A stretch of 56,567 nt of DNA. It comes from Gnetum montanum. Lineage: Eukaryota > Plantae > Gnetophyta. Both the position numbers and the translations under genes were made by a program. Below are positions 20,263-37,050 of the stretch, piece after piece (position 1 is the first letter of the stretch; each line of letters begins with the position of its first letter). A model generated the notes under the pieces. It was not told the origin of the DNA. It was given only the letters and a program-made list of their open reading frames with translations, and made no database searches. Where the stretch lies: positions 349,914-406,480 of the forward strand of contig MNCI01001334.1 of assembly GCA_015680685.1 (NCBI GenBank), in the 5' to 3' direction.

Positions 20263-20739
20263 GTTTGTACATCTTTTCCTTTCTTACGGACAAAACTTCA
20301 TTTGTACCTATAATTAATTACTAACACTTTTACTTCTACATGCATATATAACATATAGTATAATAAGCACTTTCAATTGAAGTTTATGTAAAAATTAAAA
20401 TTTGAAAATATTTTATAACATGTTATTAACAATGCCATTTGTCCATAGTGGAAGTCCTTTTTGATGGGATTTTAAATAAATGGGTGCATAGAGAAGGGAG
20501 TGATTCAAAAATCCAAAACTTCTAGTTTTGTTTTACATAAAAAAAATGTCAAGATTTGTGTTTATTATGTCTGCATTTTGCTTTTTGCAAGATGGTTTGA
20601 ATAATGCTTGATTCCTCATCATTTATGATTGATTAACAATGATTAGAGAGAGTAAATAGTTCCAATGGTTCATTACAATGTATTCCTTGAGAATTTTCTA
20701 GAGGGTTAAATTTTTAGACTCTAGGCTAGGATTTCATTG

Positions 20740-20895
20740 GCCATTCCTTGGATGCGAGGATCACTTGGAGCCACAGTGCTTATTTTGCTAAACAGGTCCT
20801 GGGAGGGTTGGTAGATAAGTGAAACTTTAACCTCTTCGAGTGGCTACATCCAAGCTCGAATCTAGGTCTTCGACTTGAGAAACAAGTTGGTAGAT
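20740..20895 (-). mobile_element. Au-like / RTE-associated SINE remnant
   Basis: Minus strand has a B-box-like gattcgagc and caaccctcccaggacctg; second copy at 6740-6835. Confidence 0.45.
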
Positions 20896-21288
20896 GGTAA
20901 TTCATACACTGTCTTGATTCATATATCATTGTTTTGTTAAGTCAGTTGGGTCATAAGAGTATGTTACGATTTGTAAGGTATTTATTTATGAATCAATTCT
21001 TACAACTTGTAAAGTGTTTGTAAGATCAGTTACTATTATCGTAACGAAGTGTTGTGTCGATTATGATGAGTCATAACCTTTCATCATGTTAAAGGTCTCG
21101 CCAATACCAAGTTAGTGTGAGTACTCATAGTAAAAGTGATAACCAAAAGTACAAGTATAATTGTTCATAATTAAGGAACAAATGGTTACGACCAAAAGGT
21201 CCAAGAATACAAAATTGCAAAAGGAAGTTATCCGAAGAAAAGAAAAGATTTTTGATTACAAAATTACTTTATTGAATATTTTAACATA

Positions 21289-24200
21289 TTTTTTTTTTGG
21301 AAAACTTCAGGGTTAAATTAAAGAAAAGGCATATGTACAATCATAGCAATAGCAAAAAGAGGGGAGAAAGCATCTCGCCTCACCCCCAAAACTTAGGGGG
21401 ATGTGGGAACAGTCTTCCCCCCCGCCTCCCCCCACCCACAATCAGAATTCCCTATAAGGATTTAAGACAACAACAAAAACATGGAGAACAAAAAATCTAC
21501 AAAACCTAGAAGAAGAAGAAAAACCAAGATTTAAAGATCCATGCCCTTCCAAACACGTCTACCCCCTAGCAACATAGACCCCCACAACCGATCAATCTAT
21601 AGACATAAAGGGAGAGTCCAGCATTGGTAGTAGGGCCTCTCCTAACTATGGAGGGCTTCCAGCACCTCTTGGTACAACTTTGTTGCCACGAAGGCTGTAG
21701 CCTCCTACAATTCTTTAAGGCTCTTCTGCTTGCACATGTGTTCCTCAATAGTCCCCCTTCCATTTGGGTATAGCCTCTGACTCTCATGGCGAATATGGTG
21801 CCGAAGCAGAGCCCATGGCACAATATGCCTGATCTTTAGAGTCATGTAGGGGCATCTCTCCTTCTCTAGCCACTTGTGAATGCAATCCTCATGAGCTCAA
21901 TCTAGGCAAGCCTGGATCTCTGACTCCTCTTGCTTCTCTTCCTTGTGCTACCGTTATGCCTCCCTTTCCTACTCCTCCTAGAGCCTAACTTCCTCCTAGA
22001 GTCTTTGTTAAATTTGCTACCTTAGCTCCTCCTCCAACTACAACTTGGCCATTGTGTCTACGAAATTCCATCGCATCCTCTTCATCCTTGCCTCCTCTCG
22101 TAGTTGAGCAAGTTCCTATTGGAACTCCTCATCCCTACGTCTTAGCTCTTCCAGCTCCTATTGGAGCTTCTCCTCCTAGCACTACAACCTCTTCACCCAG
22201 ACTGCTTACATCTCCTCCAAAGCTCACTCCACCTCTCCCATCTTTGCCCATTGCTTGGATGTTCCCGATGGCCTTCCCCCTTCCACTAGCCTCCCCTACA
22301 TAATCAGAACTCCCTCCCCTCCCTACCCAACTTAGGGCCCTTCTAGCCTCCCTTGGGATTGCAACGACTCCCCAACCTTCATCTCCCTAGTCACCCCATG
22401 GTCCAAGCTTCCCCCCTAGACATCCTCTTCATACTCACTTGTATTGGTAGAAATGTCCACCATAGATGGTGGTACGTAGTGCCTCCTTCTGCTCCCATAG
22501 ACCACCCATACCCTTGAGGCACTAGGTTGCATAGGAATGTACCCCATCATCCCTCGTCCCCTCTCCACTTGCTAAAGCATGTGAATAAGGCCTAAGTGAG
22601 TCCCCTGCCTCCTCCAGCATAGTGCCACCAAGAAAAAATGAGCTAGATTAACCCCAATTTCCCTCCAAAGATAGCAAAGGAACTCAAAGTGTACCCCCAA
22701 TAGCTTCTAGGTGTTGCCAAAATGAATAAAAAATCTATCCACCAAAATTACTATATCCTACCAAATGGGTTCCAAAGCTGCTTTGGGAACCTACCCTCTC
22801 ATTGTCTTGGGCACCTTCCTCAAGAAGAATTCACATGCATCTTGTAGCCCTTTGCCCTACACCCCCACCTCCTCCCCTTCCATTGGTGTATGTAGATATC
22901 TAGCAATGGCCACCTCAATGAGCGTACTTCTCACCCCCTTGAACAGAGTAACATCCCCAAGCCAATTAGTATAAAATGGTCCATCCTTAAGCTCTGAGTC
23001 CCCCCCTTAGCTTCTTCAGCATTAGAGCCTAACCAACCTTGCCCACCAGTTATCTCAGAACTAGATTACATTGGCACTCCTCCCATAGTAGCTCAAACAT
23101 TGAGGTTATCCCCATGGCCACCTACGCTTCCTTCCATGTTCAAATTCCAGCAATTGCCACTTGTGTTGGTAATGGAGGATGAATGTTCCCAAAAACCTAG
23201 GAGTTTTTGACCTACCACAATTGCCAAAGAATAGTAAGGGTCAATGAATCCTTGTTCAGTGTAGTCGGCATTCAAATGCATGCAGCCTACCACACTCTCT
23301 GTGAATAAGTGCAATGTCATGCAAAATGTTCCATGGTTTCCCCCCTCGCCATGCAAAGCGGACACGTGTCATTCACCTGTGACCCCTGCCTTCACAACAT
23401 GTGTCGCATAGGTATAGCACTATGTTTTATCAACCAAAGAAAATATTTGATTTTCTCTAGGAGGCTATCCTTCCATAATTGCAACCACCCCCTAACAATG
23501 GGATACTTATGTTGGAGTAGTTGCTTTAGCTACACATTTGTCAACCCACCTGGTACAAAGCCTTGTATGTGTGAAACTAACACCTACCAAAAATTTGAAT
23601 CGTTGATAGTGGCCTCCCATTGCCTATACTTTTGACCCATAATCTGTACCCACAGAGCACGAATCTGCTAGAGTAACCAGTGGAGGCCCACAGCTCAAGC
23701 ATTCTCAAAACTTAGCAACCTGAGACCCTCGCCTGCTTCAATCTAGCCACCTTATCCCACACAACAAGGTGCATCCGACTATCCCCTTTACCCCCAACCA
23801 AACAAGATTGCACACAATGCAGTCAATTTTCTCAGTTGCCCTGGTTGGGAGGAGGTGGCAGATGCAACAAATCGAGCCATAGCCTATAAAATTGACCCTA
23901 CCAACATCAACTTCCCTGCATTGGACCTCGTCCGTCGAAGCAAGTGCATCACCTCCTACACTAGCAAAATCTAATCCTGCAGAAATCTACCCTAAACAAA
24001 GCTTGCCTATTGTTCTCCCATGAGGTGCTACATCATGGGCCCCATCCATGCAACCAACATTTTCGAAAAGAGCCTAATTAGAGTGTTGCACACCCCAAGA
24101 GGAAAAAATTTTGTATGACTCAATGGATTGGATGACTTCAGGATTACTACTCGTCGTAAGCAGTTAATCTCCCTTCTTACCTAGCCCCACATCAATATCT

Positions 24201-25265
24201 CATTGAAGGCGTCTAGGATATTTCCCCCTAGTTCCTTAGTAAATGTTCAAAAAAGTTCCACAAGTCACCCATTCGGTCTTGGTGCCTTGCCTCCTTTCAT
24301 AGATGCTAGTGCCCCCTCCAACTCCCCCCTAGTAAAACATGTCAACAACTTATAATTGTCCTCCTCCTCTAAAATCCTCGGAATATCAATAGAGATCAGT
24401 TTGGTCTCCCGCTATTGCCAAATGTCAACCCAGTACCTCAAGAGAGGTTTTGCAACCTCTTGCTTCCCCACAACAACCTTTTCTTCCTGAATGGAAGGTA
24501 TCCTCTTAGCCAAGCAAGCTACTGCAAAAAATAAATGTGTATTCCTATCCCCCTCCCTCAGCTAATGAACCTATCCCCTATGTCCCCAATATGTTTCCTC
24601 CTCTTTGTCAAGTGCCTATAGCTCCCACTACACCTCCCCCTCGATATCCTCTTGCTCTTGATCTAGCTCCTGAGCCCGCTTTATCCACTCCAGACATCAT
24701 ATAAGCTTCCCCTGACAATATTGAAACAAGAATTTGTCCTTAGACTTGATCCCATGAATATGCTATTTGAGTGAACTCAGCCCTTGTTTTAGAAATTCTC
24801 TGGGATCCCTACCTTGTCGGTAGGATCCCCAAATATCCTCCACCAATGGTCTCAACTAGGGCTTCATCAGCCATAACTATTTGAATCTGAAATGGCATGG
24901 CTCCTTGTCTTTTGGATGCCCAATCATACAAACCAAAGGTCTATGATCTGACATGACTCTTTCTTTGCCAATGATGGACACCCCTTTACCCATCAACATG
25001 TTTAGTCTCATCCAAATATGATCAATTTTGGTAATGAGTTTGTCCTACCCCTTTCGTTGGTTACACCACGTGAATTGATACCCCTTGACTTCCATATCCA
25101 CCTGCCCGTGGGCTGTTAGAAAATCCTAGAACTGTTGACTCCTTGGAGGGTTTGAAAAGTCCCCATCCGACTTCTCCCACAAATGGAGGCACTAGTTGAA
25201 ATCCCCTAGCAAGATCCACTACCTCCAATCAGCAATCATGGGTGCAATTCATTCCAAAACCCTAT
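21289..25265 (-). mobile_element. L1-clade LINE (5'-truncated, RT partly deleted) with extra 3' coding module and poly(A)
   Basis: WILLGDFN (~25200), FTWCNQR and SDHRP endonuclease motifs; KAPRPNG (~24280); ETMEH zinc-finger remnant (~23330); T10 at 21289-21298 is the A-tail. Confidence 0.85.
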
Positions 25266-25570
25266 AAAGAACTTTTGAATGATATTGCATTAACTTTAAT
25301 ATAAGCACCTTACCATCACTCCAGATGATGGTCCCTTACCATTCCTTGGATGCAAGCAAGTTAATAAAACTTACTCTTTAGCTAGAGGTATTGCACCAAA
25401 TGGCAACTATGAAACCTATTTTGAAGTAGAAGCCCAATATCTGTGAAGTGCTGCTTGTTCTCAATTAAAGTTAATATTAGATAGAAGCATGCCCTTTGGT
25501 AGTTCTTTGATTTTGTAAAATACTATTTAATGTGCTGCACCATATTTTGTTTTTTTTTTTACTTTACTAG

Positions 25571-25699
25571 GATCTTCTTGGGCTGCTGTGGTGGAGCACA
25601 GAGAAGGCCTTGTTTGGCCTTCTGATTTGTACCTTGAAGGGAGTGACCAGCATCGAGGGCGGTTTTAGAGTTCTCTATTAAATAGCATTGCTACCAGAG
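25571..25699 (+). pseudogene. OVA2: IleRS exon ([28 protein letters not shown])
   Basis: ag/gt bounded; CAG changed to TAG at 25666-25668; RGWF changed to RGRF. Confidence 0.9.
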
Positions 25700-26142
25700 G
25701 TCATGTCCACATTTTCATAACCAGAATTGTCTTCAAGATATCAATATGATTTTGACACAAAATAGTATATACTATAAAATACGATTCGAATTTATAAGTC
25801 TGGCATGGTTGAATGACACCCATTCCAGTTTTTTCCAAATCATATTTTTTATTACCTGTCTGTATAGATTGAAATTGAGTTGACAATATAGCATAGGAAC
25901 ACCACCATTGGCTTCCTTTAGGTAGTTCATGTTGTTGGCTTATGTTGAATTCAAATAAGTGTTAGGTTATTGTGTTAAGCCCAAACAAATGGTGGGTTGT
26001 GATTAACTAGCTCACGTCTTGGCTTCTGTTAATTTTTGGGAGATCTAGTTCTATTTCAAATTTTTATTTTGTGAACAGTCAAAGGCATTCCTATTCTATG
26101 ATTTCCTTGGTAATCAGATGTTTCTGTTATCTATTTTTTCAG

Positions 26143-26266
26143 GTAAAGTGCCTTATAAGAATGTGTTAACACATAGGTTTGTGTTGGATGAGAGAGGACA
26201 CAAAATAAGTCACTTGGAAACGTAATGGATCCTCTGGTTGTGATTTAGGGTGGCAAAAATCAGAAG
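26143..26266 (+). pseudogene. OVA2: IleRS KMSKS exon, motif destroyed
   Basis: KVPYKNVLTHRFVLDERGH, then AAAATAAGTCA (4-nt deletion in the K-M-S-K-S codons), then SLGNVMDP; TAG at 26246. Confidence 0.9.
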
Positions 26267-26345
26267 GTTTGTTCTCTTCTGGTGTTGAACTAAATGATTT
26301 ACTTAATTTCTTCATGAATACATGTCAGCTTATTCTTCTTGATAG

Positions 26346-26510
26346 GAGGAACCAGTATATGGAGCAGATGTACTGCAACTCGGGGTGTCAAGTGTTGATT
26401 ATACTAGTGATGTATTGATTGGTCCTCAAATTTTGAGACAAATATCAGATATATATCGAAAATTGCGTGGAACTGTGAGATATCTCCTTTCAAATCTTCA
26501 TGGTTGGAAA
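26346..26510 (+). pseudogene. OVA2: IleRS exon ([52 protein letters not shown])
   Basis: ag/gtaagt bounded, open frame, overlaps ORF 26385-26657. Confidence 0.92.
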
Positions 26511-26678
26511 GTAAGTTTCATTAAAAATCATATATTTATATTTTTAAGCCCTGTGAAATGTTTGGCTAAAATTAAATACGAATTAAATTATCATGGAAAT
26601 ATTGCTTTCTATTGCTGTTCGTTATACTTTGTTGGTTCCTGTAAATGCTTATATTAGCTATTGTTTATAATTTTGTGG

Positions 26679-26804
26679 ATTGAGATGGCAATTCTATATG
26701 ATACCCTGCCTATGATAGATAAATATGCTCTATTTCAACTAGCAAATGTCATAAGAAATATCAAAGATAGTTACGTGTGTTATCAATTTTATAAGATATT
26801 CCAG
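26679..26804 (+). pseudogene. OVA2: IleRS exon (..YDTLPMIDKYALFQLANV...YQFYKIFQ)
   Basis: Acceptor AG changed to GG (ttttgtgg); gt donor at 26805. Confidence 0.85.
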
Positions 26805-28289
26805 GTATGATGGCGTTGTTTCATTAATAGCATGTCTCGTGTTGCAGACTCTTCTCTAATTAATGAGCTTTCTTAATAATCCATCTATAGTGATTAAAAT
26901 GGAGATTTTAATTTTAAGGTAAATGGTTTTTCAGGATTTATTTTAGTTTTTCTTAAACCATCTTGAGAATGATGTGGTGTTATTCTCTAAATCCATTTTG
27001 ATTCAAATGTCCATGCAAATAGTCTTGCTTTAGTCTCCATGATTTAAAATCAAAATGGATTCAAAGAATAACACCATGATATAACAAATTATTTGCATGA
27101 TCTGGAATCTTGCTTTAGTCTTCATGCAAATAGTCTTGCTTTAGTCTCCATGATATAATAAACCATCTTGAACATGATATAGTTATAGGCTTAATGAATT
27201 TTTTTTCTGACCTACACGTATATCTATATGAAACTGAAACCAAAACTAAAACTGAACATTTATTTTGTCCGAAGACCCATAGGATCTATTGGATAGATAT
27301 TACATTTTCACGAAAAATAAAGACAAACTCTACAAATTGACCAACCACCAATTGGGGCAACAAAAATAATTCATACAAGTCTTTTGTTGTAACATTATAA
27401 TGCTATCTCAAATGTTGTAACACTAAGCTAACACCTCATTGTATATATAAATGATCACTCAATTACAACTATCAGTAATAAATACTTGCACACTGAGGTA
27501 CAACAGTTGTACCATTGTCATTAATTACAACTATCAACTCATTGCATGTTTATTGCTTCTTTCCATCCCATGCCATTTAATGTTAGCCTATGCAGTTGAG
27601 TAAATATTTGCTTGGGGAAACTTGGTGATAAATTTAATGGGCATCAAACCACATTGTTATTCAAATTTAAACCTTCAGTTGTACATTTCAGTTAGTTTAG
27701 ATGATGGCATGTGACTTTTTAGTTAAGATGTGTGCTTTGCATCACCCAAGTTACAAGTTTGATTTCAGTGGGCTACCTTCTGAGATATTCGAGCAATATG
27801 TGAAAGAAAAGGGTTTGAAATTGAACCATTCCAAAAGGATATTGTGAATGATTCTGGGTCTGTCATGCAATGTGAACAAGCTTAAAGGCATGTGCAAGTT
27901 CTTCTGAAGGGTTAATTATATGGTTAGAAGTTATAGTTCAAGCTTGCATTACATAAGTTATAATTTGTATGGACTCTGAAGGGTTAATTAATGTGGATCC
28001 CAGAGAAACACACTCTCAAATAGGACCACCATTTATCTAAAATGAATGGAAAATCACTCAACCATAAAAATATTATCTTGTTCGATGCTTATTTTTGTGC
28101 TCTCTTAAAATATTATAAGAACTTATATTGTACTACCATAGTGTTATATTACAGTAGTCAATTTAAAATTTTTCAAAGAATGTTCATACTTTTATATAGG
28201 ATCAGAAATGTTATTTCTTATAAATAACAATTGTGATCAAATTTGAAAAATTGAAAAATGAAATTGTGAGTTTTGGTGGATTGACTAAG

Positions 28290-28950
28290 ATTTTTGAAAT
28301 GGGTGGAGGGAGCAAGGCATGGGACGAAGGCAGAGAGAATGAGGCAGGGAGTGTGAATGGGTGAGGGTCACATGGGGGAGGTTGAGACCATGGCGGACCC
28401 ATAGGGGGAGGATCTAGTGTAGTTGGTTCGAAGGGAAGCCCCACAGAGGATGGAGGTCCTATGGAGCTTGGGGGAGAAGGCCCTAGGGGATTTGGCTCAA
28501 GTTGGGAGTAGTTGGCTAGGGGGGGCCATTGAAAAGGCTTGGAACCTTGGTGATGGTGGCATTAAGTCCATCTCCTGGTTGGGAGGAATGCTAAGATTGC
28601 AGGTGAAGGGGTCGTTTCAAGATGGACTATGCACTATGGAGTTAAGCTCTATTGGGAAGTTTGTCTCTTCTAAGTCATGACCAAGGCTAGATCTAATTAA
28701 GTGTTGGGTTATTGCCTCGTGGGTCATGGGGGAGGTCTAGGTCCAATCACTCACTAAGGATATGCTACTATTCATTTTTCAAACTTTAGAGGAAAGAGAC
28801 TGAGTTTTGTTGGGGGTCTGTGGTTCTTTGGGGCCAGGGGCCAAGGGTGCATCGGGAGGCTTGGCTTTTCTCATGGATGCCCATTTGGGTTAGGGTCTTG
28901 CAGGTGCCTTGGGAGCTCTAGAACGAGGATTTCCTAAAGGCTCTAGTGGG
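28290..28950 (+). mobile_element. L1 ORF1 (DUF4283-like) 5' fragment
   Basis: PRLDLIKCWV..W...V*VQSLTKDMLLFIFQTLEERD*VL.G.WFFG, preceded by a G-rich leader. Confidence 0.65.
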
Positions 28951-31212
28951 CCACTTTGGGGAGTTTATCTACTTTGATAAGTTCATGAACAACTTCTTGA
29001 GTTTTTGCATTAATAATTGTAATAGTCTTTCTATGTGTTTGCATGCATGGTTTGTTGTGAGGTTGTGTATGTGCTTTGCTTGGACTATGGTGGAAGTGAT
29101 TGATTGGAATAGTAATAAATTTGTTGGCTTGATTTTTTATATGTATTAAGACTAAATGTTTAAATACTTTATTCATAAGAAATATGCTTTAAAATACATG
29201 CTAGGAATGTTTTAGAAAAATAATAAATATATGGGAAAACAAATTATTTTTTGTTCTATTTGAACAAAGATGTTGAGAAACAAAATAAAAACAAAGGGAG
29301 ATATGCTAAGGTGTACCTCAAGAGCTGAAACACATATGTTGAGATGTAAATGATTTAAAAAGGAAATGCAAAAGAATGCTCATTACTAAGGAACTTGACC
29401 TATGAATCAAGTTGGAGGAATCTGACCCATGAATCAAGGATATTGTGCGCAAATATCATAGCTTTTATTTTATTTTTTGTAAGCATATGAAATATTTCAT
29501 GTGATGCATTCTTCTTTTTAGTTTAAAATAGTAGAATATAAGTACCCTCTCCATGGTTATAGAAAGGTCACATGATGACCTTTTAAGCCTCAAAAGACGA
29601 TGGAAAAATTCACATCATTGATTACTTCAATAAAAAGGTGTCTTATTTGATTATGTATTCTAAACTTGCCCTTATCATGACTATATTTTGAAAACTCTTT
29701 CCTGCATCTTATGACAATCCTAAATGGTACAGAGATGGATATTATGCTTGAATGTTTTGTAATTATCAAGAGGAATTGAACCTAAGATTTAGCAAAATTT
29801 GAATTCTGAAATATCGAAAGCTATTGATTTAGGAATTGAACCTACAACCTGGGAATATACATATGTTATTGGATTTTGATAGTGATCATGGAAAGAATTG
29901 AATGCATGACTCATTGATGTGAGGGAAAACAAGAACTTTAAAAAGAAAAGAAAAGGAAACAAATAGTTTCAAAGAAAGAGTCAATTACAAGAAACAACCC
30001 ATTATCTTTTATTCCACAAACAAATAGGGAGAGAAGGAGAGGGAAGAGACACATGAGGCAAAAGTAGCTAAGCAGGACCAAGAAAAAAGGGATACAATAG
30101 CAAGGAGTGTGGCTAGGAAGGGAGAGAAGATTGTGGCTGGTATAGGAGATAGCATAAAGAAAGAAAACTAGTGTTGCATATCATTCCAACATTCTGATAA
30201 TTCCTCCTAGTAAGTAAGAAATCTGGGCAAGGAGGTAAAATGATCTATCTTTGTTCTATTTGATAATGACTAGCAAGGCTAATTTCCTCAACTTCTCTTC
30301 TTGCTTGCTTAATCACCTTCACAATGCTTGTATGAAATTATCAAGATTGTTGTTGTAAGCTTGGATTGTTGAATCCTTTATTGCTATTTTGGATCTCTCC
30401 ACCTGTCCTTTAAACTCTCACACCTAAATCACACGGATGAGTGTTTTTTTTTTTTAACAATTTACAAACACATAATGATTTGGGACATTTTTGGCAAAAG
30501 ATTGCCAATAAGGGCCAAGGATCCCTAATATGAGGATTGGTACTATTGGCAAAAAGTGAGAGTAGACTTGAGCCCATGGATAATTGTGAATGTTTTACAA
30601 TTGTTGAATTCTTGGGTTTTGGTTGAAATTTGGTTGATGAACCCTTCCCCTTTGAATGCATAAATCTTGGGTTTGAGTCTTGATTTATAATTTTTTTTCT
30701 ATATCTTTTTGTAAGTCTGATGAAGTGGGGGAAAACCTAGGATGTTAATTTATGGTTATGATTTATCTATTAAAACATATGAGTTGCTTGATTGATTATT
30801 AATGGTATGATGGTTACAAAAGTTAAATTCAGATGATCATGTTTTGCGAGTGTTGCTGGAAAATATATAATATTATATGCCATCGAACAAATCTAAGATT
30901 ATTGATTTATCTACCTTTTGTGGTCATTTCTTTGGTTTACAAATGTGTAGATGATTCTAATTAGATATTTCTTTTTAGGTTGAATAAAAAAAAGAGCTTG
31001 ATTTTTAAATTTGATGAATCTTGCACAGTTTTTTACTGTGGTAATTTCTTTTCAAAATTATTTCTTAATTCTTAAAATTAATATTGATTGACTTGTTGCA
31101 GAGCTAGATCTTGGGGCTACTGATTTTGCTTTAATTTTATATGTTAATGTCAGTTTTATTATTGTAAAAAGAAAGTCACTTATGCATTTTCTTCTTTCAA
31201 CTGATTTTTTTT

Positions 31213-34200
31213 GCGGCTTCGATTGCTAGCCCTTGCTGCCTATGAATGGGTGTTATAGAGGTTCTATGTTTGGAGGTCGTTGTCCTCTATCGAATTGTTG
31301 AAGGAGGTCATCCTAGAGCTACCATTTGGAGAAGAGAAGCTTGTGGAATATAAGAACGTCCCCTCCAATGATCCAATCTTGGTTTTTCTACATTGTGGAC
31401 CCCTGACAACATGTGAGACCTACAATAAGGGTAACCACACTACTAAAGATTATAAAGTACGTTCTAGAGATGTTGGGCTGAATAGATGACCAAATGTTGA
31501 GGGTTGGGTGTTGATGGAAAAAAAGGAACACCCTTCTTCTTTACCTTCTTCCCTATGGTGTTTGGGAGGGGGTGTGTGTGTGCGTGCGAAGGGGGNNNNN
31601 NNNNNNNNNNNNNNNNNNTGGGGGGTGGCAAGGGGGATGGGGGAAGATCTTATGTCTCAAGAAACAAATCAAGAATCTATGGACTACAAAGAAGTATTCT
31701 TTTAGAATAGCTTAGATGGTCCTCCAACAGAGAGTTTTGGACCTTTAGGCCCGACAGGAGAATGGTGAACCTTTGGAGAAGGAAGAGCATGACTTAATAG
31801 TTGAAATCCAACTATTGGATAGAGAAGAGGAGCAATACTAGAAAGAGAGATCTAGAGGCCTATGGCTTAGGGAGGGGGACAGGAATCCCTACTTCTTTTT
31901 TGCTACTGCAAAAGCCAATAATCAAGCCAAAAAGATCCACCACATTCTTTAGGGGAAAACCCTCTTGCATGATATGTAGAACATTCCTCAAGAGATACAG
32001 AAGCATTGGGCGAGGATTTGAACTAGGGGAGATTCCTCCCCTATCTCCATCCAAATTTAAAAATTTATTGGAAAGGGGGATAACAATAGACTAGTTGCCC
32101 TATAACCATGTTGGAACTCTTTGAGGCTATGGCTTTCCTCAAAGCTACTAGGACCCCAGGGCCTGATGGTTGGCCCATCGAGTTCTTCTAGGAATTCTTT
32201 GATATCCTTAATAACATCCTAGATGCCTTCAACCTTATGCTAAAGTAGGGACAAGTTCCCCACAAAATCAATTGCTAATTAATTGTGCTCATTTTGAAGA
32301 TCCCAAACCCCATGGTGCCCATGCACTATAGACTAACTGCAGTGTGTAATACATTACTCAGACTCTTCACCAAAATCCTTGTTCAATGACTACAACCATT
32401 GATGTTGTGTTTGGTTGGTGCTCATTAGGTTGGCTTTGTTAAAGGAAGATATATGCAAGACTAGATCTTGTTGCTTTAGGAAACCATGCACTCCATACAA
32501 AGAGGTTGGCTCCCTAGTATGTGTATCAAACTTGATATTGCAAAGGCCTATGATACCATTCAATGGGATGCTTTTTGAGACATTACGCTCATGAAGGGAT
32601 TTCACCCAAAAGTTTTGGTTCTCTGCATCAACCTGCAAGCCACAGGGGCCTAATCCGTTGATTTAAATGCTTGGCTTTGGGGGTTTTCCTCCCCAAAAAG
32701 GTGATCTTCTTTCCTCCTATTATTTTATCATCACCATGGATACCATGAAATTTTATTGTAGGGAGGAGAAGGTCAAAGGATAAAACATTAAAGGGTTTAC
32801 TTGCATTATGGAATATTATGCCAATGACACAATTCTTATGACCAGATGACACAATTCTTATGATCCACGTGGTTGTGCCATAGGCCCTGGCTATCAACAT
32901 GGCTATGGATAGGATGGTAAAAGAAATTGGCTTGAAGTTGAATAAGGAGAAATCAACAATACACTTCCTTCATATGGAAGGATCAGTTCAAAGGCAAGTT
33001 TGTCAAGAGCTTGGAATTTTGAAGTGTACCATTCAAGTCTCTTATCTAGGGATGCCCATGTTTGCCTAGGGTAGATTGGCGACCTTGACTCATTTGATTT
33101 AGTGGATCTAGTCCTGAGTAGGTTTGTAGACCATGTGTTTTCTAATAAGAAAAGGGAAAATGATCTTGGCCACATTTTTCCTCTTGGCTATTGCTAGATA
33201 TGTTGCCTCTATTGCTACACCACCAAATGGTGTCATCAACAAAATTGACCAAATTATACGAAACTTTATTTGGTGTGGAGGTAAGGGTTGAGAACCCTGC
33301 ACCTTGTCTACTAGGACAAGGACTCATTCATATGGCAGAACTTTTGCAATTATGCCCATAATATAACTTAATGGGGGATGATGGGGCCTAGCTATGCAAA
33401 CTTATAAAATTTAAATATCCAATGGAGCATGGCTATAGAAAATTAAATGTTTCGGTTGGCTTGTGTTGTAGGGCATGCTACTTGTTCGTGCCTACCTGAA
33501 GGCATGGGGAATAATAAATGAGGATAGTTGCCCCCTCTGCAATGTTGACATAGAAACTGTGCAACACCTATTTCTATAGTGTTCTTATGCTTCAGACGTC
33601 TGGCCTTCTGCTACCATTCTCCTATCTCTACAAGTGCATGGGGATTCGCATGCAACGGTGGTTCTATGGTGCATTTGGAAAATCAGGAACATAGATTTTT
33701 TAAACTAGGTTGCCCCCTTCATCATTGCAAATGGCTCTCTCAACTACTTGGTTGTGGAAGGAGGCTATTGCGGTGATGGGGGTGACAACGACATACAAGC
33801 TTGATGCAGACAGATTCTGCAATAATTAGGAATTGTGGGCTTTGATTGTGTAGATGTGGTGGGATGATCTACTACCGTTGGTGGAGAACCCCAACCTCGT
33901 TGATGCCAACTTCTACAAGTGGTGGAGGGGGGACTCCACCACTTTTTGTGAGGTGTGGATTAACCTCATGGATTTTTCTTTGGTAGGGTACCTAGGGGTG
34001 CATGCAACAGGGAAGATGGTGTTGCTGATTGGTTGGAGGTTGCAGAACATGGAGGGCTTCTTCCAGGGGCTGGTGCCGATTGGTAGTAGCTAGGTCCCTA
34101 GGTCAATGCTCTTGCTACTTTGGTAGGCAATCACAAAGCTTTTCAATAGATACTTCATCCAATTTGGGAATGTATGGAAGCTGCAAGAGGTCCATTTTGC

Positions 34201-35470
34201 GTTCTTGCGATGCATGTGTTTGGGTCAGCCTACCAATATCCCTAAATTCTTCTTAGCTTCCCTTCAACAGGAAAGGTAGGGGAAACACTTTGGTCTTATC
34301 TTGGCCCTTTGGTGGGTGGTGTAGCCAAGTGATCTAGGGCTTGTCTGGCCCTCAGTTTTTTCATGTCTATTTACGAACAATGTAGCCCTGTTGAGGAGGA
34401 TTTTTTCTCCTCGGACCTTGTGCTATGGAATGACATGACAGTGCTAGGCGAGAGGTCCACTTAACCTCCAGATTTTAGGAAGAAGATTCTCCTGGCTTAG
34501 AAGGTTGTGCACTAGGAGTTGCAAGCTAGTTTCCAAGAGGAGTTCGCAAAGGCAACAATTGAGTTTGAAGAGAGAATATGCAAAGAGGAGCAGGCTAAGT
34601 GGGAGGCCATGCTTCTCAAGTGGGACTAGCAAGACTAGGCTACGACAATGGAGGAAAGTCAGTGCAACAAAGAAGTAACTAAGGAAGAAAGAAGGCACCA
34701 TTTGGAACGAGTTGGAAGAACAGCTATGTGCGTAGATCTGAGAAGACCTACTCAGGGAGGAGTAGGAAAGGAAGTTGCAAGAGGAGGAACAACAATACAT
34801 TTGGACTTGCTTGAAGAATAGCAAGTTAAGAGTTGCCTGGACACTGACCATGAGTCTAATGGTTGCTGTTGGTTCCAGAATGGAAGATGCTCATATGTTG
34901 TACTAGGTATCAATGGAAATGTTGCTTGGACTGCTTTATGACACTACATTTGAATTACTTTCACTAAGCTTTTTCCTAACGAGACCAAAAGTCTAGTGCC
35001 TGAGGACAAATAGAAGAGTGAAGACAAGTACAAGGAATTCCAAGAACCAGCTATTTTTATGACCATTGAAAACTACAGGTCTATCCTAGAAGTGTTACAC
35101 TCCCAAAAAAAGGCTAGATGTGCATGTACTAGGTTGCTGCACTCCATCCGACAGGGTTTCATTGTCAATCTATTGTCAAGGGTGCTAGGTTGTCTATTTA
35201 GGGCCTTTCCCTTTTGGCCTTGGTTCTCCAGGGTTTTTTTGGGGTGGCTTTTGTTCTGCCCCAGTCCCATACACCCCGACATTAATTTTTTTTTTCTTGT
35301 TTTGCCCTTGGGGAGGGCTTCCTGAAAAACATTTTGCCTGGTTCTACTTGGTGGGTGTTTACACCCTAGGAATTTGGCTTGGGGGTGTACACTGCCCAAG
35401 GTAATTGTTCATAATCTGTTTGAATCTTAATACAACCTGACCTTTTCTTAAAATAAGAAAAAGAAAAGAG
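31213..35470 (+). mobile_element. L1-clade LINE: ORF1 zinc-knuckle remnant, RT, zf-RVT, extra 3' coding module, A-rich tail
   Basis: VEYKNVP..CETYNKGNH (ORF1); TPGPDGWPIEFF (~32155); KLDIAKAYD (~32530); YANDT (~32820); LKLNKEKS; CPLCNVDIETVQHLFL*C (~33530); A-rich end 35450-35483. Confidence 0.88.
31596..31618. other. Assembly gap (N run) between G-tracts
   Basis: 23 Ns flanked by ggggg and tggggggtgg. Confidence 0.95.
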
Positions 35471-35705
35471 AAAAGAAGAAAAAGCTATGGTAAAATCCTA
35501 GAAGTTTTTTTTAAAAAAAAATTGGTTATATTATTATAGCAAGCATGGTCATTGATTGTGGAATTTGTTCTTTAGAAATGCTAACTCTAGAGTATCAACC
35601 TACAAATATAAAACAAAGTTTTCTACTGTTATAAGTTTGTTTGAAATGAATTGCATTTTCCTAGAGAGAAAAGTAACTGTTCATATTATCTCTGTTTGAC
35701 TACAG

Positions 35706-35777
35706 ACCATGCAGGTTTGCAATTGTTGACTTGTCAAACTTCTATTTTGATGTTGCCAAAGATCGGTTGTATGTTGG
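35706..35777 (+). pseudogene. OVA2: IleRS exon (TMQ/FAIVDLSNFYFDVAKDRLYVG)
   Basis: ag/gt bounded; 2-nt deletion (CAGAGG to CAGG) near 35714. Confidence 0.88.
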
Positions 35778-37050
35778 GTACGTACAATAGTTACGAATAC
35801 TGTTAGCATCATCCTTTTTATAGAGCTTTTTCCAGGCAGTCTCTGTAAATTTCAGATTGGGTTGATTTATTGTTGTAAAGCATAAATTTCACTATTTTCG
35901 TTCTACACATGACAAAAGAGAGCAGCCATTTCATCTTAATGTTGTCAGAATGCCACTCTCTTTTGCTGCATCTCCAAATATCTCCAAATATCCTAAAACT
36001 ATGAATCTTTTCGTACTGTTTTCAGAGGCCAAATGCCTAAAGCACCTCTTTGAGAAAGCAGTCTTGGTATATGGTTTCAGTTGGAAAGAGCAGCTGTTAT
36101 ATTTTTTATGTTTAACTGTATGATGGTGAGAATCCCAAAGTTATTCATTTTTTATTATCTTAAAACATCACTATCGCTCAACCAAGATGAAAAAGAATCC
36201 AATACCAGCCTAGCATTTAAATAATGCATGCTGGCTAAAGAATTCAGCCATTTCAGCTAATTGCTGTTAACAATTGATCAGCCTTATAATTGTAGAAAAG
36301 ATTTCATCATTTCGGGGTCAAATTTTTCCATTAAGATTTAGCAATATATCTATAGCCACCCACTGGACCATACATTTCAACTGTGCCCTTCAGATCACAT
36401 TTACACTGAGACTCAAATTACTAAGTCATGCTACGTCAATATGGCTACCTAATACTATATTTCCTTTTTTCCCGATCGAATAAAGAAGCCGAGTCAAAAT
36501 TGATGAGATACAGGCCAAGAGAGTTTACCTTCTATTTTATAATATGCACTAACAATTTTCCATGTGCACCGAATTAACTGTAAAATATCATCATAAAAGG
36601 AATGACGAAATCCATCAGTTAGAATTGCATATCATACATTTAGATTTTGGTGCACTCAAATACCTGAGACATTGTCTAATAGAAGACCTTGCTAAAACAG
36701 AAAGTACATGAAATGCTTAGTTTTAGGAAGGCAAGGAAGTTTCCAAAGTCTTCTGAAGTTAGTATGCCATCACCTTTCAGAATCATGGTGATCAAAATTT
36801 ATTGCATCTAACAGCAATCCAAACTCCTAAGTATGCCATTGCCTTTCAGAATCATAGTGAACAAAATTTATTGCATCTAAAACTCCTGAGTTTAGCCAAA
36901 AAATATGCTTTGCAAGTACTATATGGAAGAACATGTTTCAGACACCTATGTGTATATGCCAAAGCGTTGAACATTCTGTTACTTCATTCCTTGTTATTTC
37001 CCCTAAATGCCTTACATTTTTATTTGTTTATACATCTCTACATCTAACAG

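Follow-up and report, generated by a model that had tools for sequence, protein, structure and literature searches.

What does an L1 element encode beyond its zinc finger? The second open reading frame (ORF2) of a long interspersed nuclear element (LINE) is generally thought of as an endonuclease, a reverse transcriptase (RT) and a zinc finger with few add-ons, RNase H in plants and a helicase in insects. The question is raised by a stretch of 56,567 nucleotides (nt) of Gnetum montanum DNA (GenBank assembly GCA_015680685.1, contig MNCI01001334.1, positions 349,914 to 406,480 of the forward strand), referred to here as the 56.6-kb window, in whose numbering all positions are given. It contains two decayed plant-type L1 LINEs: copy A on the minus strand, from ~25040 to 21290, and copy B on the plus strand, from 31656 to ~35500. 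Downstream of the zinc finger, both encode a long extension, be it a part of ORF2 or a separate ORF3. Very probably it is real, has been under selection and belongs to the elements of this L1 lineage themselves. The domain that ends it may be a diverged relative of the J-domain, the module by which Hsp70 is recruited; in these subfamilies it would be J-like but devoid of the HPD tripeptide; we give this reading a probability of about 0.5.

Does the extension belong to the elements? The zinc finger (zf-RVT, Pfam PF13966) is recognised in copy B at 33472-33576 (E 2.1e-6; 28.7 bits, above the cut-off of 27.5) and in copy A at 23395-23529 (E 4.3e-4; 21.3 bits, below that cut-off). Upstream of the RT, the LREGDRNT..FF motif of the L1 linker is visible in stop-free pieces, and an SDHxP motif, spotted by eye in a stop-free piece of copy A, is probably a remnant of the endonuclease C-terminus. 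Pfam gave no match on this endonuclease-remnant piece, nor did it recognise RVT_1 in the short decayed stop-free pieces of either copy; a two-sequence profile of one RT piece found only two chains in the Protein Data Bank (PDB), both RTs of R2 retrotransposons, over motifs 1-2 at E 0.6-0.8. The frames shift several times through decay in both copies. At the 3′ end, a run of ten A residues (A10, 21298-21289) closes copy A and an A-rich stretch (35450-35520) closes copy B. The shared frame of copy A stops at a TAG (21644-21642), followed by ~345 nt of noncoding sequence and then A10; in copy B the homology with copy A stops at 35103, and the A-rich stretch lies ~350 nt further on. The module is therefore inside each element, since in both it is located between zf-RVT and the 3′ untranslated region (UTR) with its A run. 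Counted from where zf-RVT ends up to the last codon that both copies share, it measures ~1.5 kb, or ~510 codons. The parts follow one another as an accessory domain of ~155 amino acids (aa), a poorly conserved linker, a charged helical stretch, a terminal domain of ~90 aa that is predicted to be all-helical, a stop, a 3′ UTR of ~350 nt and poly-A; the charged stretch and the terminal domain are together called the tail below. The parts of the two elements are as follows, each with the evidence by which it was placed.

Copy A, 24880..25044 (minus): probable remnant of the endonuclease C-terminus (SDHxP); motif seen by eye
Copy A, 23932..24771 (minus): L1 linker (LREGDRNT..FF) and N-terminal blocks of the RT; blastp against copy B
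Copy A, 23176..23529 (minus): zf-RVT region; Pfam PF13966, and blastp block against copy B at E 2.6e-13
Copy A, 22566..23048 (minus): accessory domain, ~155 aa; blastp and tblastn against copy B
Copy A, 21909..22181 (minus): charged helical (coiled-coil-like) stretch with 11 stops; composition, part of the tail block
Copy A, 21645..21908 (minus): terminal domain, CLD..HE..W..RC and then the putative J-like part with YPN at 21770-21762; tblastn, hhalign, structure prediction
Copy A, 21289..21644 (minus): TAG stop, 3′ UTR, G-rich run (21437-21417) and A10 tail; read from the sequence, G-quadruplex-like motif
Copy B, 31596..31618 (no strand): assembly gap just 5′ of the element; run of N
Copy B, 31656..32503 (plus): L1 linker and N-terminal blocks of the RT; blastp against copy A
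Copy B, 33433..33717 (plus): zf-RVT region; Pfam PF13966
Copy B, 33857..34318 (plus): accessory domain; blastp, tblastn and family contigs
Copy B, 34579..34833 (plus): charged helical stretch; blastp and composition
Copy B, 34834..35103 (plus): terminal domain with FPN at 34972-34980; tblastn, alignment and family contigs
Copy B, 35104..35520 (plus): 3′ UTR and A-rich tail (35450-35520); read from the sequence

How much of the protein do the two copies share? The three sense frames of 20500-28000 (minus) were compared by blastp with the three of 28000-36500 (plus). Six blocks were obtained, strictly colinear, with nothing else at E<0.01.

Block 1: A 24771-24343, B 31656-32096; 29% over 147 aa, E 1.6e-10
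Block 2: A 24324-23932, B 32114-32503; 48% over 131 aa, E 1.9e-25
Block 3: A 23460-23176, B 33433-33717; E 2.6e-13
Block 4: A 23196-23089, B 33695-33802
Block 5: A 23048-22566, B 33857-34318; 37% over 161 aa, E 1.6e-17
Block 6 (tail): A 22181-21612, B 34579-35136; 26% over 194 aa, E 7.5e-13

When each tail is searched by tblastn against the whole window, only itself and the other copy are found (105-108 aa, 31-32% identity, E 1e-12 to 3e-13). At the DNA level no similarity is detected in the tail by blastn at word size 7, which yields only two short RT matches between the copies, and the similarity of the tails is confined to a single frame pair; thus, the conservation resides in the protein. 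Identity at codon positions 1, 2 and 3 is 0.49/0.59/0.30 in the terminal domain, 0.38/0.62/0.37 in the zf-RVT block, 0.55/0.60/0.36 in the accessory domain and 0.61/0.70/0.33 in the RT, values taken from a protein-guided alignment that itself favours positions 1 and 2, so that most weight is given to the E-value and to the saturation of position 3. Between the copies, 0.34 of the amino acids are identical in the terminal domain and 0.33 in the zf-RVT block, which argues that the tail predates the split of the subfamilies and has since changed as fast as the remainder of ORF2. As judged from these comparisons, purifying selection acted on the extension during the divergence of the two subfamilies. 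An earlier reading made from the letters alone (the sequence-only reading) had quoted one translation per copy, and both are reproduced exactly, each in one frame. It had claimed a homologous coding module downstream of zf-RVT in both LINEs, which agrees with the tail block and its place inside each element; a conservation stronger in protein than in DNA, as is now seen in tblastn values of E ~1e-12 where blastn finds nothing; and past selection, to which the one frame pair, the saturated third positions and the equal identities of tail and zf-RVT all point. Its proposal of a LINE lineage with a coding extension beyond zf-RVT, as an ORF3 or as part of ORF2, also holds, two subfamilies carrying the extension with 34% identity in the tail and 33% in zf-RVT.

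The same reading had explained the stop codons in the frames by deamination, with Arg or Gln in the other copy. This is right for copy B, whose two TGA stops (34939 and 34951) face the Arg codons CGG and CGC in copy A. For the TAG stops of copy A, said to face Gln, it is right at 21707, opposite CAA in copy B. The rule leaves two other stops unexplained, one in each copy: a TGA opposite ACT at 21899 in copy A, and a TAG opposite ATG at 35011 in copy B.

The accessory domain is better conserved between the copies than the tail (tblastn E 1e-18) and matches no Pfam family; its AlphaFold2 (AF2) model is unreliable, one of five models reaching a pLDDT of 67 and the rest 35-46. Pfam searches of the extension pieces of both copies, from zf-RVT to the stop, revealed neither RNase H (RVT_3) nor any other family. 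The charged stretch consists of E, K, R, D and Q to 56% in copy A, without Pro or Gly, and to 42% in copy B, with seven Pro/Gly. The sequence-only reading had described the module as a coiled coil followed by a Cys/His domain. The better-conserved 155-aa accessory domain was missed; the coiled coil, judged by composition, is plausible in copy A and weaker in copy B. The case for a Cys/His domain is weak: no more than three positions, C1, H6 and C19, are invariant, a fourth column holds His or Cys, and the first Cys is Phe in part of the family contigs. Metal binding fares no better, since the conserved ligands are too few and its sole backing is a sub-threshold RING-H2 match to 15 residues.

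The whole window has five G-quadruplex-like motifs, of which three are on the sense strand of copy A, at 21437-21417 (3′ UTR), 22328-22312 and 22877-22848, all minus, and the region 22001-24000 has a GC content of 0.47 and a GC skew of -0.33; the 3′ UTR of copy B is without such a motif. Antisense to the charged stretch of copy B, an ATG-initiated open reading frame (ORF) of 135 aa is found at 34444-34851 (minus), among only two ORFs of at least 130 aa in the window. It is probably a by-product of purine-rich codons, which spare the opposite strand from stops.

Is the extension found outside this window? Logan contigs of four DNA runs, carrying three species labels, were compared with copy B. 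They cover it piecewise at 80-95% likeness, the accessory domain and the tail included, and the copy-B family is multi-copy in three related species. Contig depth is 17-185 in the tail, and contigs of 632-646 nt span 33657-34299 in the accessory domain at a depth of 29-53. The end of zf-RVT is joined with the accessory domain in contigs, and the tail with the UTR (e.g., 34896-35274). Contig depth is low in the linker that separates the accessory domain from the coiled coil, and this linker is not conserved. The differences are overwhelmingly transitions, as expected under deamination decay. Several of the indels listed are of 3 nt and in frame (GGA at 32209, AAA at 34077 and 3 nt missing at 31833), together with 1-nt and longer indels. 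The stop at 34091 in the accessory domain of copy B is C, not T, in every other family contig. In the terminal domain the family letters are 34973 T>A, 35047 C>G (Pro to Ala) and 35091 A>T, and 34835 G>T, which turns the first Cys into Phe, occurs in part of the contigs.

What, then, is the terminal domain? The L-x-P-N of the sequence-only reading's shared pattern falls on the HPD loop of a J-domain when the two are laid side by side, and with modest confidence the domain is better read as J-domain-like. By eye, a gap-free register can be drawn after the RC: Y..L.I falls on YxxLGV, the basic helix with two Arg positions on helix II, L-[YF]-P-N on y-H-P-D and [LY]KE[LF]QEA on FKEixEA. A J profile was built from 25 J-domains (E. 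coli DnaJ, 14 diverse plasmid-borne J-domains and ten close relatives of DnaJ) and compared by hhalign with the alignment of copies A and B, in which stops were masked as X. The by-eye register was chosen, with a score of 16.1 and a P of 0.02; a narrower J profile gave a P of 0.08. Five of 400 column shuffles attained the hhalign score, and the reversed alignment scored 7.5. When 32 columns, from helix I through HPD, are scored without gaps at 112,938 positions of the window, this block ranks 43rd in copy B and 101st in copy A, and its score falls by 17-25 bits when it is shifted by one codon. For the 63-aa stop-free piece of copy A, AF2 predicts helices at residues 16-22, 28-42 and 50-62 (pLDDT 60), helices III and IV being cut by the stop; they fall where helices I, II and III of a J-domain would, and the loop that joins the second to the third contains YPN. 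At 35047, the letter of the family places Ala at the column of a conserved Ala of J-domains. Compared with the J-domain family (PF00226), the length, the predicted helix layout, the Y..L.I register, the basic helix II, the x-P-x loop and the KE..EA at the start of helix III are alike, whereas the tripeptide is YPN, not HPD, there is no significant profile match, and a Cys/His-bearing helix precedes the domain. J-like domains without HPD are known, such as Pam16/Tim16 and plant ARC6, and J-domains also occur in viruses, as in the polyomavirus T antigen.

Is YPN the original state or a product of decay? The codons at the HPD position are TAC CCA AAT (YPN) in copy A and TTT CCT AAC (FPN) in copy B. 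All other family contigs have A at 34973, the middle base of the first of these codons, which gives Tyr if 34972 stays T, and no T>C is present there among the best-supported rows. In predicted translation, two diverged L1 subfamilies here thus read YPN at this position. Neither the Tyr nor the Asn codon is in a CpG context, and both residues are shared by the two subfamilies, so that YPN is probably the state of active elements and not a result of parallel decay.

Several points weigh against kinship with the J-domain. The HPD tripeptide is absent from both copies, which have YPN (A) and FPN (B), and the Leu-Ala core of helix II (RkLAlkyHPD) is not kept. A P of 0.01-0.02 is modest for a single pre-chosen hypothesis, and the register was first seen by eye. 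Database searches with the tail, for which the 63-aa piece of copy A served as the query unless stated otherwise, were also negative. The DnaJ family is absent among Pfam matches at E<=10, and NCBIfam gave nothing relevant. Neither phmmer against the PDB nor hmmsearch with an A+B profile against the PDB returned a J-domain, only chance aldolase matches at E 0.1-0.3. There were 0 phmmer matches among 1.84 billion representatives; a word-based search for protein homologues gave no candidate for the copy A piece or for the C-terminal piece of copy B; and the Atlas gave no match for residues 14-63 of the former. When a J-domain hidden Markov model was run over the six-frame window (hmmsearch --max), the tails were not ranked. 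The AF2 model of the tail, a poor one (pLDDT 60), had no Foldseek match, and a VIA search with it, in which the best Z was 3.9, found no J-domain. Likewise, BLASTP of the 63-aa piece against the J-domain of E. coli DnaJ produced no alignment, and in a deamination-tolerant scan for J-domains the background was too high for any discrimination. These negative searches weigh little, because Pfam also misses the RT, which is certain, and the RT profile reaches just E 0.6.

If the J-domain is not the ancestor, the terminal domain of this selected extension would be a helical domain specific to the lineage. We regard this as a real possibility with the odds against it. Such a domain may start with a small Cys/His metal site, C-x4-H-x4-[HC]-x7-C, and could serve nucleic-acid binding, assembly of the ribonucleoprotein (RNP) or oligomerisation with the charged helix. 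That no search matches any known family, that HPD is lacking in both subfamilies and that the core residues of J helix II are not kept would all follow naturally, and four aligned columns could supply the ligands, although the first of them, the initial Cys, is Phe in part of the family contigs. What it leaves unaccounted for is the J register found by hhalign, gap-free from helix I to the loop with a score that few shuffles attain (5/400), and the rank of the J block, which in each copy is among the best 0.1% of the window's positions.

A different kind of explanation concerns the whole tail, which could be foreign to the LINE: L1 elements can transduce 3′ flanks, and a fragment of a host gene might have been acquired in this way, or an unrelated repeat might adjoin both copies by chance. 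The unconserved linker of low contig depth between the accessory domain and the coiled coil speaks in its favour. However, two subfamilies carry the tail in the same order and as diverged there as in zf-RVT, the UTR and the A tail come after it and not before it in both copies, the codon-position pattern speaks for long selection within the element lineage, and single contigs run from zf-RVT into the accessory domain or from the tail into the UTR, all of which makes a foreign origin very unlikely. The reading of the start of the terminal domain as a RING-H2-type zinc finger, with the tail as a ubiquitin-ligase-like module, is nearly refuted: the matches that suggested it, to residues 1-16 of the copy A piece in Pfam (zf-rbx1 at E 0.044, zf-RING_16 at 0.18 and zf-RING_2 at 0.2) and to a RING-H2 cluster as the best Atlas match of the whole piece (0.79), amount to 14.5 bits against a cut-off of 31 and to an Atlas score in the range (under 0.9) that counts as a lead only, they cover the second half of a RING alone with no first C-x2-C...C-x-H half upstream, they have no counterpart in copy B, and Tyr occupies the last ligand position in both copies, where the eight-ligand C3H2C3 spacing is not kept.

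How might a J-derived tail work in a LINE? Under the J-domain reading, a short helix I (RC.Y..L.I) would be followed by a long basic helix II, the YPN loop and a helix III beginning at [LY]KE[LF]QEA. The tail might tether the LINE protein or its RNP to Hsp70-type chaperones or to some other partner, with the charged helix as a spacer or an oligomeriser. As Tyr and Asn stand where His and Asp are expected, ATP hydrolysis by Hsp70 would probably not be triggered in the canonical manner. In this sublineage the domain would be an HPD-less J-like adaptor, unless YPN reflects shared decay. Taken as a whole, the proposal is that a plant L1 lineage, in at least three related species, permanently carries a chaperone-docking module at the C-terminus of ORF2, composed of the 155-aa domain, the charged coiled coil and a J relative in which HPD has become YPN, and that this serves as an HPD-less adaptor or decoy; we hold it to be somewhat short of an even chance.

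Other LINEs are known to have gained domains at the C-terminus of ORF2. An archaeal-type RNase H has been gained there by plant L1s (Smyshlyaev et al. 2013, as cited in PMC5203782 and PMC4686597). That case is alike in the plant L1 clade with zf-RVT and in the site of gain, the C-terminus of ORF2 after the zinc finger; it differs in that the extension described here has no RVT_3 signal, is ~510 aa long, falls into three parts and has no recognised catalytic motif. In insect R1 LINEs, a tobamovirus-like SF1 helicase is located at the C-terminus behind a spacer of >300 aa (PMC4686597). Here too a foreign or novel domain stands at the C-terminus of ORF2 with a long spacer without known homology, but the LINE clade, the host kingdom and the added domain differ. 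No description of a LINE with a J-domain or DnaJ was found in the full-text literature searched.

A long selected extension that is kept through the divergence of subfamilies indicates that some additional activity is required by the element. Should the terminal domain derive from a J-domain, the host Hsp70 system would be recruited or mimicked by the LINE, as it is by some viruses, and this would offer a handle on the folding or trafficking of LINE RNPs or on their escape from silencing in plants. For annotation, neither ORF finders nor Pfam would pick up this ~1.5 kb of coding sequence in decayed copies, and it would be taken for 3′ UTR.

Between the two elements, at 28386-28934 (plus), some stop-free pieces are rich in G and their translations in Gly, and a G-quadruplex-like motif is located at 28830-28856; Pfam gave no family on these pieces except a weak match to DUF6316 (E 0.012).

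Where does copy B begin? The run of N at 31596-31618 lies in G-rich sequence, 38 nt 5′ of the first homology between the copies (31656) and 3 kb 5′ of the tail, and no claim on the two copies made here crosses it. A contig of a sister species spans 31300 to 31657 with 27 fewer letters, and a contig of another species has 8 letters between 31572 and 31624; as these bridge the run, the true gap would be short or absent. Nothing 5′ of it is similar to the endonuclease end of copy A, and copy B therefore looks 5′-truncated at ~31656. The sequence just 5′ of the gap, 31300-31595 (plus), has no relation to copy A and is itself multi-copy, with a contig depth of 43-98. Copy B, 5′-truncated, has thus likely inserted into or next to a different repeat, and the junction is also present in a sister-species contig.

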